Counted from the first letter of the stretch, positions 17,501-25,161 are shown. The stretch: DNA of 64,000 nt from Laetmonice hystrix (GCA_965235115.1 OZ249440.1:18042001-18106000); one strand, 5' to 3'. Notes: a model not told the origin generated them from the sequence alone. Program-made: numbers and translations.

Positions 17501-18002
17501 CATAAGATATTCATGTGTTACCGGCCTAGTTGGCATTTCCTCTGGAAAACACCCCAAATTCCAAGTTATTGATTTCGGTACGAAACTATTGACAAACGGT
17601 AAATGTGACTGTCATAAATTATATCGTTATATCTTTATTTACATGTGAAAGTCTTTTTCACGGAAGTTGCTAAACCGTTAATTGAAGATGGTCAAAAGCT
17701 ACTTGCCGCTTCAATTCCTCCAACGAAGGTTTCGTACCCCTTCCTTTAGAAACCTTTCTAATCTCCAATAGTCCGAGCCGAGTACTAATTATTGATGGTT
17801 ACGTCGTCTGTTGTAATAGGATATTTGTCAACCACTGGGATCAATTGTGTGTGGTTGACTGAGGGTAAACGGGGTCACACCTGGGCCAGGTGTGCCTTGT
17901 TAAAGTAAAGGTATCCTCATATTGTTTAACTCACTCACATATTATACCCAGACCTTGCTGACTGAAGGAAATTAACCTTACTATTGGTCCGGATCACACG
18001 CA

Positions 18003-18229
18003 CAGACCGGTCTATAACTCCATACCAATCTCATACTGAGAACAGACAGAAGACTACCGTCAGACAGTCAATGTCTGACAGACCGGTCTATAACTTCATA
18101 CCATTCTCATACTGAGAACAGACAAAAGACTACCGTCAGACAGTCAATGTCTGACAGACCGGTCTATAACTCCATACCATTCTCATACTGAGAACAGACA
18201 GAAGACTACCGTCAGACAGTCAATGTCTG
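18003..18229. repeat. 76-bp tandem repeat x3
   Basis: CAGACCGGTCTATAAC... starts at 18003, 18079 and 18155. The copies differ at only a few positions. Confidence 0.95.
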
Positions 18230-19273
18230 TATCAGCAGACTCTACATATCATATCTCATTAACGGTCAGATTATTTTGTTATAATACAGCTGGTAATAGA
18301 GGCCCATTAGTTTGTCTGACTGCCGGGTATACTTGCTGATGTCATACCATCATGATGTGATCCGTTATAAATTTAACAAAATGATTGACAGCCACTGGCT
18401 GGGATGTACGAGAATCCCGTTCCCAATAAAAAAGAGAATTCTATGACACCTGTCCATAGACAATGAAGATATTTTGTCATTGTACCGGTAATGTCTTTGT
18501 ACTCGGAGGTGGCAGGTGGACATACCAAGGCTGACATGTTGGGTAGTTGCCACCGCCTTCAATACTTTCATACTATTTTGCTACCGGTAAGTTTATGAAA
18601 CATATTTGATCCCGGTGGCGTCTGTAACTACAAGTGCTTCAAGTACCAGTTTACAAAAGTTCTCAACGAATTCATCCATGTCCATGCGGGACTAAGTATC
18701 GTTGGGTACACAGGTTGAAACCATGCGACTCCCACTCTATTCAAACTTACTTTTGTCCTTTTTTTATTGTTAGTGGGTAATACAATCGGTGCTTGTCGCA
18801 AACTTTGAGCTCATAAAGTTGGACATGAAAGCGGTGTAACCGTTACCTGGCATAATGTCTATGTATTCTAACGACTCCACCCACCCTTCAAACCCTCGGC
18901 CACCCACCACTACATCACCACCACAAACTGTTGTCAAGTTACCGGGGAATTCCCTCGTCATTGACCACGTCAAGGTCAACTTGACCTTGCCTCCTTTCAT
19001 TCACACCTTAATCTCACCGTAATCCTACCCTGTTACCCTGTGGATTATCGTGTCATCCCTGCGCGAACTCCACCGGACACTAGTTGATCGATATAGGCTG
19101 ATCTCTCACCCAGTAATCTACCGTAACTTTGCCAAGTAATCCTCTCATAGCACAATATCAGTAAATTGTGGTCCCCCTCCCGTTATATCATGGACCCTAG
19201 TGAGATCACCACAATAAAACAGATGTCAGGAACCTTTCAGAAAGGTACCCCGGCACAAGACCATCAAATGTAA

Positions 19274-19954
19274 CATTATCAACAAGCCGAAAGACGTGAC
19301 GCCCGCAGCATTGTGGCGTTAGCACGTGCGAAAGGTTTGGGTTGCAAACAAAAGGGCTCTGCAGTATTGTTAGAGGGTGTCCGCTATAATCCACGAGAGT
19401 TTAATTCCCTCCCGCATAACTTGTCACTGGAAGCAGCCAAAATAGTTCAGGTACCAGACGGTTTGGCCTTTCAGGGGCACCATGCATACCTCAGCAATAT
19501 GTATGCCATTCCCGTCCAGTACGCAGGAAACACTTTCCCTAGCGCCGAATCAGCGTATCAAAGCACATGTGCCAGGGTGCATGGGGAGGAAGCATTAGCT
19601 TTGCAAATACAGGCCGAGAGTGATCCATACGTGGTTAAAAGATTGTCCCGGCGTGTTCGAACCAGCGATGAATGGAACCTCAAGAAAGTGACCATAATGA
19701 AGGAAATTGTCGAATCAAAGTTCGACCAGAATGACACCATACGTGAAAAACTTCTGAAAACTAAGGGACAGCTCTTTGAAGCTACTACAGACAGTGTGTT
19801 TGGTTGCGGCTTCACACTCGGTCAACGCAACAGGATAAGCGCAGACAACGTCATCTCTGGAAACCACTTGGGCCTGATCCTTGCCAAATACAGAGACACC
19901 TACAGCATCAACAACGCGGAGCCTACAGCACAAGCACCACCAAAATCGAAGTAG
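19274..19954 (+). CDS. C-terminal part of an ORF1-like protein with a NADAR (YbiA/DUF1768-like) domain; 5'-incomplete
   Basis: The frame is open from 19274 (after TAA at 19271-19273) to TAG at 19952-19954. NADAR motifs appear in order: YLSNMY, FPSAESAYQ, PYVVKRLSR, W..KK..IM...KFDQN, LLKT..QLFEATTDSVFGCG, GNHLGLILAKYRD. They are preceded by ERRDARSIVALARAKG..KQKGSAVLLEGVRY, which resembles the end of a LINE ORF1 RRM/CTD region. The first in-frame ATG (19499) lies inside the domain. Confidence 0.85.
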   Translation, partial: HYQQAERRDARSIVALARAKGLGCKQKGSAVLLEGVRYNPREFNSLPHNLSLEAAKIVQVPDGLAFQGHHAYLSNMYAIPVQYAGNTFPSAESAYQSTCARVHGEEALALQIQAESDPYVVKRLSRRVRTSDEWNLKKVTIMKEIVESKFDQNDTIREKLLKTKGQLFEATTDSVFGCGFTLGQRNRISADNVISGNHLGLILAKYRDTYSINNAEPTAQAPPKSK

Positions 19955-19979
19955 CGTTCCTATTGTTTATGTAGTAATA

Positions 19980-20654
19980 ATGACCACTACAATTAACAGG
20001 TTTATTATCTTAGGCGATTCAAGAACTAAACATTTCGGGAAATTATTGAAGCACCATAACTTCCAACCCAATACAGAAGTAGTGTTAGAGACATACCCGG
20101 GTGCCACAATACTTGATGCGGCACGGCGCTTCCTGCGTAGTAACACCCACGTGTCGCTCACCGGGGTGAACGCGTATATCGTCCTGGCAGCAGGGGTCAA
20201 CAACCTTACAAGGCTCGACCGATCCTATGACGGTTCGAGGCGCATTGTCCGGCCAATCTTTAATGACATACCTGATATGGTTGACTCCTTAACAGACAGA
20301 TACACTGAGGCTAAACAGATGTTGAATGAGGCAGGGTATCGATGTATCATTTGTGAGCTGACAGGTCTGGATGTGAATAGGTACAATAGGGCAACAACAA
20401 ATTATATTAAACTCCAAGAAATTATCGACGAAGGGGTACCAATTCTGAACAGAGCCATATCTGCTCTGAATTACGATGACTGCCTGCCTACCCCGTTTCT
20501 ACAAGACTCAATCCATCACAAAGTAAAGAAGACAGACGTTTGCCGGAAAACGAAATATGCTAAATTAAGTGACGGTCTTCATCCCGATGAGAAAACTGCT
20601 GGACGCTGGTTGGAACAAATACTGAAAGCCATTAACAAGATTACCAAAAAATAG
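19980..20654 (+). CDS. SGNH/GDSL-family hydrolase (esterase), 224 aa, LINE ORF1-type esterase as a separate ORF
   Basis: Block I IILGDSRT, block II YPGA, block III AAGVNN and block V SDGLHP are all present, so the Ser-Asp-His triad motifs are intact. The ATG at 19980 has A at -3, and the frame is open from 19878. Confidence 0.88.
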   Translation: MTTTINRFIILGDSRTKHFGKLLKHHNFQPNTEVVLETYPGATILDAARRFLRSNTHVSLTGVNAYIVLAAGVNNLTRLDRSYDGSRRIVRPIFNDIPDMVDSLTDRYTEAKQMLNEAGYRCIICELTGLDVNRYNRATTNYIKLQEIIDEGVPILNRAISALNYDDCLPTPFLQDSIHHKVKKTDVCRKTKYAKLSDGLHPDEKTAGRWLEQILKAINKITKK

Positions 20655-20656
20655 TG

Positions 20657-21720
20657 GGTCTGGTCCGTATGGACAACCCTCTACCTCTGAATGTACTCCC
20701 CTATGACATGATGGACTTTATAAGTATAAAGTTCGATGTGTGAGTCTAAGGTGGCTGGGCGTGGGTGTGCGTGTGTGTGTGTGCGCACTGCTTGCGGGTC
20801 TGGTCCGTATGGACACCCCCCGCTTGCTTTGTGTGCATGTATCACCTCACACAATCAATATGACTCTAGCCCCGAATTGTTTGAACTCGCATCTGTTTAT
20901 TGAACTAATCCGTGTGTCTGGTCCGTATGGACAACCCTCTACCTCTGAATGTACTCTCCTATGACATGATGGACTTTATAAGTACAAAGTTCGATGTGTG
21001 AGTCTAAGGTGGCTGGGCGTGAGTGTGTGTGTGCGCGCACTGCTTGCGGGTCTGGTCCGTATGGACACCCCCCGCTTGCTTTGTGTGCATGTATCACCTC
21101 ACACAATCAATATGACTCTAGCCCCGAATTGTTTGAACTCGCATCTGTTTATTGAACTAATCCGTGTGTCTGGTCCGTATGGACAACCTTCAAACTCTGA
21201 ATGTACTCTCCTATGACATGATGGACTTTATAAGTATAAAGTTCGATGTGTGGGTCTAAGGTGGCTGGGCGTGGGTGTGGGTGTGTGCGCGCACTGCTTG
21301 CGGGTCTGGTCCGTATGGACACCCCCCGCTTGCTTTGTGTGCATGTATCACCTCACACAATCAATATGACTCTAGCCCCGAAATGTTTGAACTCGCATCT
21401 GTTTATTGAACTAATCCGTGTGTCTGGTCCGTATGGACAACCCTCTACCTCTGAATGTACTCTCCTATGACATGATGGACTTTATAAGTACAAAGTTCGA
21501 TGTGTGAGTCTAAGGTGGCTGGGCGTGGGTGTGTGTGTGCGCGCACTGCTTGCGGGTCTGGTCCGTATGGACAACCCTCTAGCTCGGAATGTATTCCACT
21601 GTGACTTCACAGACCTTATAAGTGTTTACGATAGTTTGTTGTGCGGGTGCAAAGGGTGTGTATGCGCGGCTGCATACTGTTTGTTGGATCTGGTCTGTAC
21701 GGACACCTCCCACCTATTGT
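20657..21720. repeat. ~252-258-bp tandem repeat (3.5 near-identical copies plus one diverged half-copy) inside the retroelement spacer
   Basis: The core GTCCGTATGGAC starts at 20663, 20803, 20921, 21055, 21173, 21309, 21427 and 21561, with a variant GTCTGTACGGAC at 21693. Spacing alternates between ~135 and 118 bp. Confidence 0.95.
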
Positions 21721-22013
21721 TATACATGTATTATTCCCTATCTGCTTGTTTTGTATGAATATATCTATTATGATTATTATCTAATTCTGCTCCTGAAACA
21801 CAAGGTACGAGGAGCCACTTACTATAAGTGTTAAGGTCTAATTATTGACCATGTGTACATGTTTGTACATATTGTCATGGTTTGAGCAAGTTCTACTTGT
21901 CTATAAACCGTTTATACCATCACCCTCATCCAAATTCATCCTCACTCACTATTTAACCCGATTAGCAAATGAAATTCCACGGTGCTATGTACTCACTAGT
22001 TTCTCTACTGTGA

Positions 22014-24882
22014 ATGGCCAACATGGATCATGCAATAAGTAGCTGTAATGATTTAGCCGCTATCAAGGGCCTGAAAATTGCACATCTGAATGTCAGAAGC
22101 CTTCCTGACAAAATTGATCAATTAAGAATTCTACTACTGAATGAACCGGTAGATATTATGTGCATCTCTGAAACCTGGACGAATGATAACTATACACCAG
22201 CCTTATTGGAAATACCAGGTTATGAACTTACTCTGTATAACCGTACTACACGTAATGATCAAGGCAATCCTGAAAGAGGTGGAGGCATAGGTTATTATGT
22301 TAGATGTCAATCTAATTTTTCAGTTACCCCTTTACATGCCTTGAACATTTGTGAGAATTATATGGAAAGTTGCTGGATTAACATTTGCTATAAGTATTCT
22401 AGACCTTTGACACTGGGGATAATATACAGGCGGCCCTCTGGTTCCCTTGAAAACTGCCTAGAGGCACTTCATGAGATGCTTAATTCTATTCCATCGGGTA
22501 ATGATATTATGATGATCGGAGACTTTAACATTGATTTTGCTAAAAATAATAACAATTCTAGGAAACTTAAAGAATTAGCACGCGAGAGATCTCTGAAACA
22601 GTTGATTAAAACACCTACCAGAGGAACACATTATACAAGTACAACTATTGACCTAATATTCGTAAAGGCCGATCACATTGTCCAGAGTGGCACAATTCCC
22701 TGTGGATTAAGTGATCATAATATAATTTTTGTTATCAAAAAGAAAATACAACCTACACATACGAGTGCAACCTTTCAAGGACGAAGCTACAAACACTTGG
22801 ACATTCCTAACTTACAAGCACGTATATCAGCCTTGGACTGGTCACCTTTCTATGAATGCTGTGATCCTACACTTAGTTGGGATATTATGCTAGGTAATAT
22901 AATGTCCGTCACCGATCTGCTATGTCCCCTCAAAGAAATAAAGATAAAAAAGGTTAAACAACCGTGGATTAACAACCTTTTACTTGAACTAATGAATGAT
23001 AGAGATGCTGTTCTGAAGCGACATGAGCAGACAAAAGACCCGGCTGACTGGGACTTGTATAAAAGGCTGAGAAACGAGGCTAAGAGAGGAGTCCGTGAAG
23101 CTAAAGAAGAGTTCATAATTGACAATCTTGTGAAACACGAAGGTGACCACAAAAAGTTCTGGAAACAGATAAATGATCTATTTCCTCGCTCTGGTAAGAA
23201 CAATGCTACTTTCAGACTGATTGAGCCAAATGGCAATACTGAAGTTGATGAAAGTAAGACTGCTGATTATATCAACTCATTTTTTGTGAATATTGGTCCT
23301 AACCTTGCCCAGCACTTCAGAGAACCCTGGGATACGGATATGGTCAGGTCAAACCTAGAACTGCTAACTATGGTTACCACTGAAGAGGAGGTTAAGAAGC
23401 TAGTTAAAGAAATTAACATATACAAATCCTCTGCTATTAAGAACATTTCATCGAAAATTCTCAAACCTGCATTCCTAATCCTAATACCTCAACTCACACA
23501 CTTGTTCAATCTATGCCTTACACATGGATTATTTCCTGATAGCTGGAAGGTTGCTACAGTCATTCCACTACAAAAAGATGGTGATAAGTCGGATGTGGGA
23601 AACCTAAGGCCAATCTCGTTACTTCCTCTGCCAGGGAAGATGTTAGAAAGGGTAATCCATGCAAATTTAATGCCTTTTCTCACAGAAAATAACCTAATAT
23701 CTGAAAAACAAGGTGGTTTTAGGCCTGGTTTTTCAACCACTAGAAAAATAGCGGACTTAACTGATGACATATACGAAGCTATGAATAATCAAGAAATTAC
23801 TGTGGCAGTCTTTATTGATTTTAAAAAAGCTTTTGATACGGTTGATCACGAAATTCTTCTCAGGAAACTAGACTTACTTGGTATTAGGAATATAAACCTT
23901 AACCTAATAACTAACTATCTATCCAACAGGAAACAACAGACCTTGGCAAATAATGTTATGTCAGATACTGCAAACATCACGTTTGGGGTCCCCCAAGGCT
24001 CTGTTCTCGGTCCGCTATTGTTTCTATTGTACGTGAATGATTTACCAGACTGTATTCAAAACGGACGTTCGCAATTATATGCTGATGACACAACTGTCTA
24101 CCAAAAACACAGTAATGTATATTGTGCGGTTCAGAGCCTTCAAGATGACCTTGACCGTTTAATGCATTGGTGCAACCTGAATAAATTAACGATCAATGTT
24201 AAAAAAACTAATAGCTATGATCTTCACTACTAAACAAAGAAAGAAAAGGCTTCCGCCAATCAATCTGACATTAGGCAATGAGCGACTCGCTATAGTAGAC
24301 TCGTATAAGTACCTGGGACTTACTCTAGACAGCACACTTAATTTTGAAAACCATCTTAAAAATATGGTAAAAACCATAAGTCACAAACTATTTATGCTAA
24401 CTAGGCTACGTCGACTGTTAACTCAGGCTGCTGCCGAAAGAGTCTATAAAACAATGATTTTACCATACTTTGACTATGCAGACATCTTCTATGAGGCATG
24501 TTCACAAAACAAACTCGATAAGTTACAAAGGATCCAAAATCGGTCTCTTAGATGCATAGCTGGTGTCAACCAAAAACATCTTTCCACTGATGAATTGCAT
24601 GAAAAGTTAAATCTCTGTAAGCTAATTACTAGAAGAAAACAGCATCTTGCGAACTTTATGTTTAAAAGATCATCGGACCCCCACTATATAGACAATAGAA
24701 ACCTAATAACAAGAGAACATAGGAAAAAGCTCATGGTAGTGACTAAACCTAATTTAGAAAAGTTCAAAGACTCCTTGGTGTATAAAGGCTCTAAACTTTG
24801 GAATAGCCTAAGTATGGAACACCAAGTATGTGCATCATATAAACTTTTTAAATCCAAAACAAAGAACTGTATTGTAGATTGA
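22014..24882 (+). CDS. LINE ORF2: APE endonuclease + reverse transcriptase (~955 aa if one apparent 1-nt insertion near 24212 is removed)
   Basis: APE motifs: HLNVRSL, ISETW, RGGGIG, IYRRPS, GDFNID, TPTR..TIDLIF, SDHN. RT motifs: WK.A.VIPL.K, NLRPISLL...GKMLE, QGGFRPG.ST, FIDFKKAFDTVDH, GVPQGSVLGPLLF, YADDT. The C-terminal frame has YKYLG, YKTMILPYFDYA and GSKLWNSL. Removing T24212 restores INVKKTKAMIF and joins track ORFs 22014..24233 and 24196..24882. Confidence 0.97.
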
Positions 24883-25161
24883 AGGAATGTGTATGTTTGT
24901 CCCCTGTATTTGGCCCTATTAAGTTGACATGTAATTTATGTGTATCATGGCATTTCCCCCCTGTACAGATGCTATAATCACCCACACATCTCATTATCAT
25001 CTCACTCTTCTATCATACCTATGTAATAGATAGTATCGAGGATAAGGTATTAGGGAAACGCGTGACTATTGTAGGAGGTTTACCAGGAAACAGGCTTATA
25101 GCCTTGTGTATATCTTCTTCAATAAAGATCATGTTTAAAAAAAAAAAAAAAAAAAAAAAAA
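24883..25161 (+). terminator. Retrotransposon 3' UTR with hairpin, polyadenylation signal and poly(A) tail
   Basis: AGGCT-TAT-AGCCT hairpin at 25092-25104, AATAAA at 25121-25126, and 25 A residues at 25137-25161. Confidence 0.85.

Follow-up and report, generated by a model that had tools for sequence, protein, structure and literature searches.

The reading frame of a NADAR domain lies on the + strand of a 64,000-nucleotide stretch of Laetmonice hystrix DNA (GCA_965235115.1 OZ249440.1:18042001-18106000; hereafter the window), within what had been taken for a retrotransposon, and it raises the question of what such an enzyme domain does in an element of this kind. A preliminary description, made from the sequence alone, had placed the domain at 19274-19954 in ORF1, the element's first open reading frame, as a possible eraser of ADP-ribosylation or anti-defence enzyme. 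We find that the NADAR is an integral part of the ORF1 protein (ORF1p) across a large and old clade of long interspersed nuclear elements (LINEs), that it has been kept by selection, and that its pair of catalytic glutamates is essentially invariant.

We first consider the identity of the domain. The + strand frame of position 19313 is open between a TAA at 19265-19267 and a TAG at 19952-19954, and a 213-amino-acid ORF is called from the GTG at 19313 in the NADAR frame. The Pfam NADAR profile (PF08719) matched with an E value of 4.1e-22 and 79.6 bits, against a curated cut-off of 35.1, over profile positions 9-160 of 163; it also matched a sibling copy of the element and three other ORF1s. Together with the profile and model comparisons below, this places a NADAR domain of the YbiA family at 19478-19897. 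In a phmmer search of the Protein Data Bank (PDB), the window protein retrieved 8BAU (2e-06) and the Escherichia coli YbiA structure 2B3W (7e-06). A profile built from an alignment of 38 full-length relatives, 23-61% identical to the protein of the sibling copy C1, matched these two at 2e-29 and 9e-25, respectively, and they were the only solved NADARs matched. Furthermore, the 212 residues encoded by the window itself were modelled with AlphaFold on a 38-sequence alignment; the model reached a mean predicted local distance difference test (pLDDT) of 91, and Foldseek against the PDB at E<0.001 returned only 8BAU (E 3e-9, template modelling (TM) score 0.72, root-mean-square deviation 2.5 Å) and 2B3W (E 7e-8, TM 0.71). 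A YbiA-like fold has a helical core with two small sheets at its flanks, and the predicted model of the window domain shows this arrangement. The domain recognised from the sequence alone is thus real, and the superposition on YbiA proposed at that time as a check came out in its favour.

The active site was then compared through the alignment with 8BAU, the NADAR of Phytophthora nicotianae with bound ADP-ribose, in which E43, K50, R79, W89, R93, E125, D130 and W133 contact the ligand (PMC11543638). The catalytic Glu of SAESAYQ (19547-19549) corresponds to E43, which contacts the distal ribose, and to E88 of the E. coli C7 NADAR, and the Glu of LFEATTD (19778-19780), the YbiA-family signature in the last strand, corresponds to E125. 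The stretch FEATTDSVFGCG holds this second Glu together with the D130 equivalent and a Phe in place of W133. Compared with 8BAU, the window protein has kept E43, R79, W89, E125 and D130 and has changed K50 to Cys, R93 to Lys and W133 to Phe. The motifs quoted in the preliminary description, namely SAESAYQ with its Glu, KFDQN with its invariant Lys, and FEATTDSVFGCG with its Glu and unusual Phe, are indeed present. One assignment had to be given up, in that the Lys of VVKRLSR, put forward as a conserved Lys of the NADAR motifs, falls in the segment aligned to K75/R79 of 8BAU and itself matches K75; the true phosphate-binding site (K50 of 8BAU, K95 of the C7 enzyme), seven residues after the catalytic Glu, is a Cys (19568-19570). 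Since the last-strand residue is Glu, the domain is assigned by its sequence to the YbiA family and not to the DarT1-associated or phage-type branches, which have Asp and His there, respectively (PMC11543638, PMC11125620). In the C7 enzyme, the K95 Ala mutant loses efficient guanine de-ADP-ribosylation and the Arg mutant keeps its activity in vitro (PMC11543638). Because this phosphate-binding Lys, essential in the NADARs characterised so far, is Cys here, the sub-clade to which the window belongs probably differs from the characterised NADARs in substrate range or efficiency.

To place the domain in its element, the window's own genome (627 Mb, 35 contigs) was searched at the DNA level. The sibling copy C1, which lies on a different chromosome (contig C1, ~38586177-38591808), showed 99% identity to exactly 19280-25161 of the window, with the homology beginning at base 19280 and ending at the poly(A) tail. 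This span is a 5'-truncated and defective copy of a LINE (non-long-terminal-repeat retrotransposon) on the + strand, and it has these hallmarks of a LINE: an ORF2 with apurinic/apyrimidinic-type endonuclease (APE) and reverse transcriptase (RT), a poly(A) 3' end, 5' truncation, and multiple dispersed copies. In C1, the NADAR frame runs upstream to an ATG and gives an ORF1 of 446 amino acids (L023:7512-8849), followed by an esterase ORF, the APE-RT frame and poly(A), so that the NADAR is part of a retrotransposon ORF1, as had been supposed. The window copy retains the last 224 of these 446 codons and the TAG (19280-19954) and is without the first 222, start codon included; such 5' truncation is usual for LINE insertions. 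The in-frame TAA at 19265-19267 lies in the flank, outside the element, and in the span originally given for the domain the part from 19280 is ORF1 of the element, while 19274-19279 is flank. Between the two copies there are 31 substitutions, a difference of one repeat unit, and two 1-bp indels, the latter in the C1 ORF2 at positions aligned to window 24003 and 24576; the copies have in common an ORF2 frameshift between ~24190 and 24233. With 99% identity, so few differences and a common frameshift, both copies are young and defective; because the frameshift is common to both, the element from which they derive was, to judge from the two sequences, probably defective beforehand or else mobilised in trans.

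The frame in the window has no start codon and stands alone, features that would also fit a captured host exon, a chance ORF or an annotation artefact with no link to a retrotransposon. We consider such an origin extremely improbable, since the same frame runs upstream into a coiled coil and an RNA recognition motif (RRM), both in the sibling and across dozens of families, hundreds of NADAR-ORF1 copies have an esterase ORF and/or APE-RT downstream, and the NADAR E values are far beyond chance. The host-exon and chance-ORF candidates are refuted outright by the full-length copies.

The intact ORF1p comprises an N-terminal coiled coil, a LINE-1 (L1)-type core of RRM and C-terminal domain (CTD)-like segment, and a C-terminal YbiA-family NADAR. 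This order follows from the ORF1 profile, which matches L1 ORF1p in its N-terminal and middle parts and NADAR structures in its C-terminal part. Run against the PDB sequences, the profile matched the L1 ORF1p entries 2YKP/2YKO at 1.7e-14, 2LDY at 2e-7 and 2W7A at 1e-4, and in the full-length relatives the match is collinear over ~170 residues, from the coiled coil through the RRM to the start of the CTD. In the window copy, the end of the RRM and the CTD-like beta hairpin, with the ERRDARSIVALARAKG and KGSAVLLEGVRY stretches, occupy 19280-19420 on the + strand by the match to 2YKP; ERRDARSIVALARAKG and the residues that follow align to the RRM-CTD junction of human L1 ORF1p, and the AlphaFold model of the window protein has strands at residues 17-24. 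The segment upstream of the NADAR had been read correctly as the C-terminal region of an ORF1: in the full-length sibling it aligns to where the RRM of human L1 ORF1p ends and its CTD begins. Pfam Transposase_22 gave no match to the ORF1 of the C1 sibling or to the other full-length ORF1s tested, so that the L1-type assignment rests on the profile-to-PDB match.

The spread of this architecture was assessed by a six-frame search of the genome with the 180-residue NADAR part, which gave 618 first-look candidates, 150 of them scored. At least 150 NADAR-ORF1 matches were thus obtained, with 31-100% identity, and most lie in open frames of 400-680 amino acids. Architecture was counted in 30 short loci and by coordinate cross-matching of the NADAR and esterase genome matches; of the 30 NADAR-ORF1 loci fetched, 14 have an APE endonuclease frame that begins 0.4-1.3 kb farther downstream and shares their strand. 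Furthermore, an exhaustive HMMER search of 1.84 billion public cluster representatives with the full ORF1 returned 6669 below an E value of 1e-3, and 195 below 1e-30; many are aligned end to end. On one foreign contig, the NADAR-ORF1 is followed by a 220-amino-acid ORF and then by endonuclease and RT, and on a second it is followed directly by a 956-amino-acid APE-RT ORF2. ESM Atlas clusters that are 100% NADAR and of ORF1-like length include annelid members.

The AlphaFold database also holds clusters that match the NADAR fold, among them K1R4Q0, K1QS99 and A0A8B6CD26. An 871-amino-acid entry named 'Enolase 4' has the fold at 676-871 and a 1029-amino-acid 'Neuroligin-4' has it at 162-373; both gene models have probably absorbed a LINE ORF1. 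A 433-amino-acid 'NADAR domain-containing protein' matches at 252-404, the position expected for the NADAR of an ORF1.

We then examined how the active site has been maintained, counting residues over 136 representatives that cover the NADAR core. The E43 equivalent is Glu in 134 and the E125 equivalent in all 136, as is the Lys of the KF..N motif; the W89 equivalent is kept in 125, K75 is Lys in 114, and W133 is replaced by another aromatic residue or retained in 134 of the 136. The K50 position is more diverse, with Lys or Arg in 100 sequences, Cys in 7, and Met, His, Ala and Ile among the others. Between families of the present genome, the proportion of synonymous differences (pS) is saturated at 0.74-0.99, and that of nonsynonymous differences (pN) in the NADAR is 0.21-0.42. 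NADAR pN lies below the pN of the coiled coil and RRM in every pair but one, where the two are equal (0.289 versus 0.290), and the constraint on the NADAR is thus no weaker than that on the RNA-binding core of ORF1p. The comparison of selection across copies, which had been suggested together with the original claim, thus spoke clearly for maintenance of the domain. With the catalytic Glu pair under such strong purifying selection, an enzymatic role in the ORF1 ribonucleoprotein (RNP) is plausible.

Among the pN comparisons, those between the families L031, L033, L035, L048 and L054 all fall within one group, which shares the Cys at the K50 position. In a maximum-likelihood tree of 60 NADAR domains, all of the Cys-bearing domains, that of the window included, form one clade (support 97/86), sister to a Lys clade; in further lineages, the position is occupied by Arg, His, Met, Ile or Ala. 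Since the Cys-bearing sequences fall into a single clade, the tree places the Lys-to-Cys change as one event, after which the domain stayed conserved. The pattern was seen over L031-L060 and the proteins P0010 and P0011, and the Cys clade shows one later change to Phe. An Arg two residues past the Cys was considered as a substitute for the Lys and rejected as a general explanation, since Ala, Ser or Glu takes its place in further families of the clade. These data bear on a reading in which the domain is a non-catalytic module, a reader of ADP-ribose or NAD or an extra surface for RNA or single-stranded DNA, most likely in the Cys clade. The loss of the essential Lys and its fixation in the window's clade would fit such a module, as would the Trp133-to-Phe change in the window protein, and DarT1-type NADARs bind DNA through extensions (PMC11543638). 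However, both catalytic Glu and the other active-site positions are invariant in the Cys clade too, and the low NADAR pN between its families is hard to explain for a mere binding surface; we therefore judge a purely binding function rather unlikely. The catalytically dead module that the preliminary description had offered as its alternative is improbable for the family as a whole, but it is conceivable for the Cys clade.

What, then, might the enzyme act on? Every NADAR tested, an oomycete and a sponge enzyme among them, takes ADP-ribose off guanosine or cytidine, in DNA as well as in RNA (PMC11543638, PMC11833690, PMC12945103). They hydrolyse the N-glycosidic link between ADP-ribose and guanine N2 in single-stranded DNA (PMC11543638) and in RNA (PMC11833690), and the cytosine link is also hydrolysed, among others by the sponge NADAR (PMC12945103). 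We propose that the ORF1p coat would bring the NADAR to the RNA of the element and to single-stranded DNA in target-primed reverse transcription, where the domain, as an N-glycohydrolase, would strip ADP-ribose off nucleobases (guanine N2 or cytosine) of RNA, cDNA or nicked target. Such adducts might otherwise block reverse transcription or mark its intermediates, and their removal would protect it, making the NADAR on ORF1p a self-carried eraser or counter-defence enzyme. That an RNP-tethered NADAR removes base-linked ADP-ribose from element RNA, cDNA or nicked target, and so protects reverse transcription, is our tentative reading, to which we give a probability of roughly 0.45.

Several observations weigh against it. 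The window copy, 5'-truncated, without an ATG and frameshifted in ORF2, is non-functional and cannot make ORF1p. Its element has Cys in place of the phosphate-binding Lys, the Cys clade offers no consistent basic residue near the lost Lys, and the R79 and D130 equivalents vary across the 136 relatives. In public sequencing runs, only three DNA-like runs of one study, probably those of the sample sequenced here, matched, and no RNA run did. A genome search with PF03496 (ADPrib_exo_Tox) gave no match, a result that is uninformative because control genomes were silent too. Finally, since YbiA acts on small molecules of the riboflavin pathway (PMC11543638), the natural substrate may not be a nucleic acid. 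Of the eraser originally proposed, a real NADAR in an ORF1 with a selected Glu pair has held, and the window copy itself is dead and belongs to a lineage in which Lys has become Cys.

The last of these points leads to an active N-glycosidase with another substrate, such as small molecules or signals derived from NAD, RNA ends of the NAD-capped or ADP-ribose-phosphate kind, or, as in the case of E. coli YbiA, damaged metabolites that resemble nucleotides. The domain belongs by its last-strand Glu to the family of YbiA, whose known substrates are the small riboflavin intermediates (PMC11543638); an entire clade does without the pyrophosphate-binding Lys and R79 varies, which fits a substrate without an ADP pyrophosphate; and a role in RNA processing has been proposed for the NADAR of RNA viruses (PMC12477816). 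On the other hand, YbiA-type enzymes do hydrolyse guanosine- and cytidine-ADP-ribose (PMC11125620, PMC12945103), RNA ADP-ribosylated at a phosphate end is not a substrate of NADARs, which are inactive on it (PMC11833690), and fusion to an RNA-binding ORF1p indicates a substrate linked to nucleic acid. A different substrate of this kind is possible, but we think it clearly less probable than removal of base-linked ADP-ribose by the RNP-tethered domain.

A further extension of the RNP-tethered eraser concerns counter-defence. Orphan antitoxin-like enzymes of phages neutralise DarTG1, whose toxin DarT1 ADP-ribosylates phage DNA (PMC11257639), and the natural antitoxin of DarTG1 is a NADAR (PMC11543638). 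Among invertebrates, clams have guanine-N2 DNA ADP-ribosyltransferases, CARP-1 (PMC11209040). From this functional analogy comes the idea that invertebrate hosts with CARP-1/pierisin-type guanine ADP-ribosyltransferases, such as clams, would use ADP-ribosylation of bases in retroelement RNA or cDNA as an immune defence and that the LINE RNP would carry the matching eraser. We hold this specific scenario to be doubtful; if it were true, a sizeable part of what databases list as 'animal NADAR proteins' would be LINE ORF1 proteins and not host enzymes.

The remaining parts of the element were also annotated. A separate ORF for an SGNH/GDSL-type esterase of 224 amino acids (19980-20654, +) starts 25 nt past the ORF1 stop in a different frame. 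Its SGNH blocks DSR, GA, GxN and DGLHP are all invariant across copies 30-57% identical, its model has a pLDDT of 81, and 85 SGNH/GDSL hydrolases were matched at E<1e-3; a sequence profile of the esterase gave no significant match in the PDB, and its identity was settled by the fold search. There are 96 genomic matches to this ORF, at least about 50 of which directly follow a scored NADAR match and share its strand. It is present in about half of the nearest families, with remnants in two, and in one family (L035-L037) it lies in the ORF1 frame with a single TAG between. A 67%-related family on contigs C11 and C20 (L024:5913-7232) has an intact NADAR-ORF1 and a 958-amino-acid ORF2. Because this family keeps only a 40-residue esterase remnant (C11:28041266-28041391), the comparison suggests loss of the esterase from an ancestral three-ORF layout.

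Downstream of the esterase, a 252-bp tandem repeat of 3.6 units (20654-21577, found with Tandem Repeats Finder) begins right at the esterase stop codon and forms the spacer before ORF2; the C1 copy has one unit fewer. A third locus, C11:21798982-21800829, consists only of the esterase 3' end and several units of this repeat. The first frame of ORF2 (22014-24233, +) contains the APE endonuclease at ~22086-22727 and the reverse transcriptase at ~23586-24212, with Pfam matches to Exo_endo_phos (2.3e-13), Exo_endo_phos_2 (7e-11) and RVT_1 (5e-34). Past the frameshift, located at ~24190-24233 as in C1, the C-terminal part of ORF2 continues in another frame (24196-24882, +). The element ends with AATAAA at 25121-25126 and an A25 tail at 25137-25161 on the + strand. 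No convincing target-site duplication was found at either the window or the C1 copy, just 6-8-mers of chance size. About 1 kb upstream of the insertion, a 76-bp tandem repeat of three units with 96% identity (18002-18229) is unrelated to the element.

Taken as a whole, the NADAR domains of at least one animal genome are borne predominantly by ORF1 proteins of LINEs, in hundreds of copies and dozens of families, and the catalytic glutamates of these domains are under long-term selection. NADARs occur in molluscs and other invertebrates, and the field has yet to settle what eukaryotic NADARs do physiologically, in a discussion that leaves transposons unmentioned (PMC11125620); an enzyme tethered to the retrotransposition RNP gives this question a testable setting. 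The domain also constitutes a second class of accessory enzyme for LINE ORF1 proteins besides the SGNH esterase, and some elements carry both. Caution is called for with database 'NADAR' proteins of molluscs and other invertebrates, which may be transposon products or chimeric gene models. The sequences hint that some invertebrate retrotransposons carry their own nucleic-acid eraser, and this suggests that ADP-ribosylation of bases in nucleic acids may matter for retroelement control in invertebrates.

Among known LINEs, the ORF2 profile was closest to human L1 ORF2p of the solved structures (1e-39, over endonuclease and RT, versus 2.6e-23 for R2). The element further resembles L1 in its type of ORF1, its AATAAA signal and its poly(A) tail; beside these stand an ORF2 of only ~955 amino acids and an endonuclease that also matches Exo_endo_phos_2. 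The ORF1p resembles that of human and mouse LINE-1 (2YKP, 2YKO, 2LDY, 2W7A) in having a coiled coil ahead of an RRM and the beginning of a CTD, but it has a short CTD and an appended enzyme domain of 170 residues that L1 lacks. That domain shares with 8BAU and YbiA (2B3W) the fold, the Glu pair, K75, W89, D130, the KF..N and GxG motifs and the last-strand Glu, whereas it is the C-terminal module of a 446-amino-acid ORF1p, not a free-standing protein, and only 23-24% identical to them.

A NADAR in a LINE ORF1 is already in print. A 2025 study of Ectocarpus transposable elements describes one Gypsy lineage whose Pol carries a YbiA-type NADAR and notes, in one sentence and a supplementary alignment, a NADAR in ORF1 of several Repbase 'Tx1' LINEs of Crassostrea gigas (PMC12477816). 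Compared by description only, these elements resemble ours in having a YbiA-type NADAR on an invertebrate LINE ORF1, and they probably belong to the same or a related LINE clade. In a full-text search, no other report linking YbiA/DUF1768 to LINEs was found. The study gives no architecture, copy numbers, selection or residue analysis, and neither a stand-alone esterase ORF nor a Cys clade; the present case draws its interest from the scale, the evidence of selection, the Cys clade and the ease of a direct test. The DarT1-NADAR system DarTG1 and the phage antitoxin-like enzymes (PMC11543638, PMC11257639) are alike in placing a NADAR on a mobile element, where in those systems it erases ADP-ribosylation of guanine in DNA. 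In contrast, the present domain has Glu where the DarT1-associated (BC4488) branch has Asp and phage NADARs have His, and it sits in a eukaryotic host; its neighbours in the window are the SGNH esterase ORF and APE-RT, with no DarT-like gene nearby.

Finally, the esterase invites comparison with the LINE ORF1p of the esterase type, as in zebrafish ZfL2-1 (4C1B) and the CR1, RTEX and Penelope clades, which likewise contribute an accessory hydrolase to the element (PMC3905857). 4C1B was absent among the 50 matches listed for our esterase model, of 85 at E<1e-3. The LINE esterases described earlier sit in ORF1p, joined to a coiled coil, and in Repbase never occur together with an RRM (PMC3905857), whereas the present esterase has its own ORF downstream of an RRM-containing, NADAR-bearing ORF1. 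As predicted from these reading frames, a separate esterase ORF beside an RRM-type ORF1 is an arrangement different from that of the known LINE esterases.

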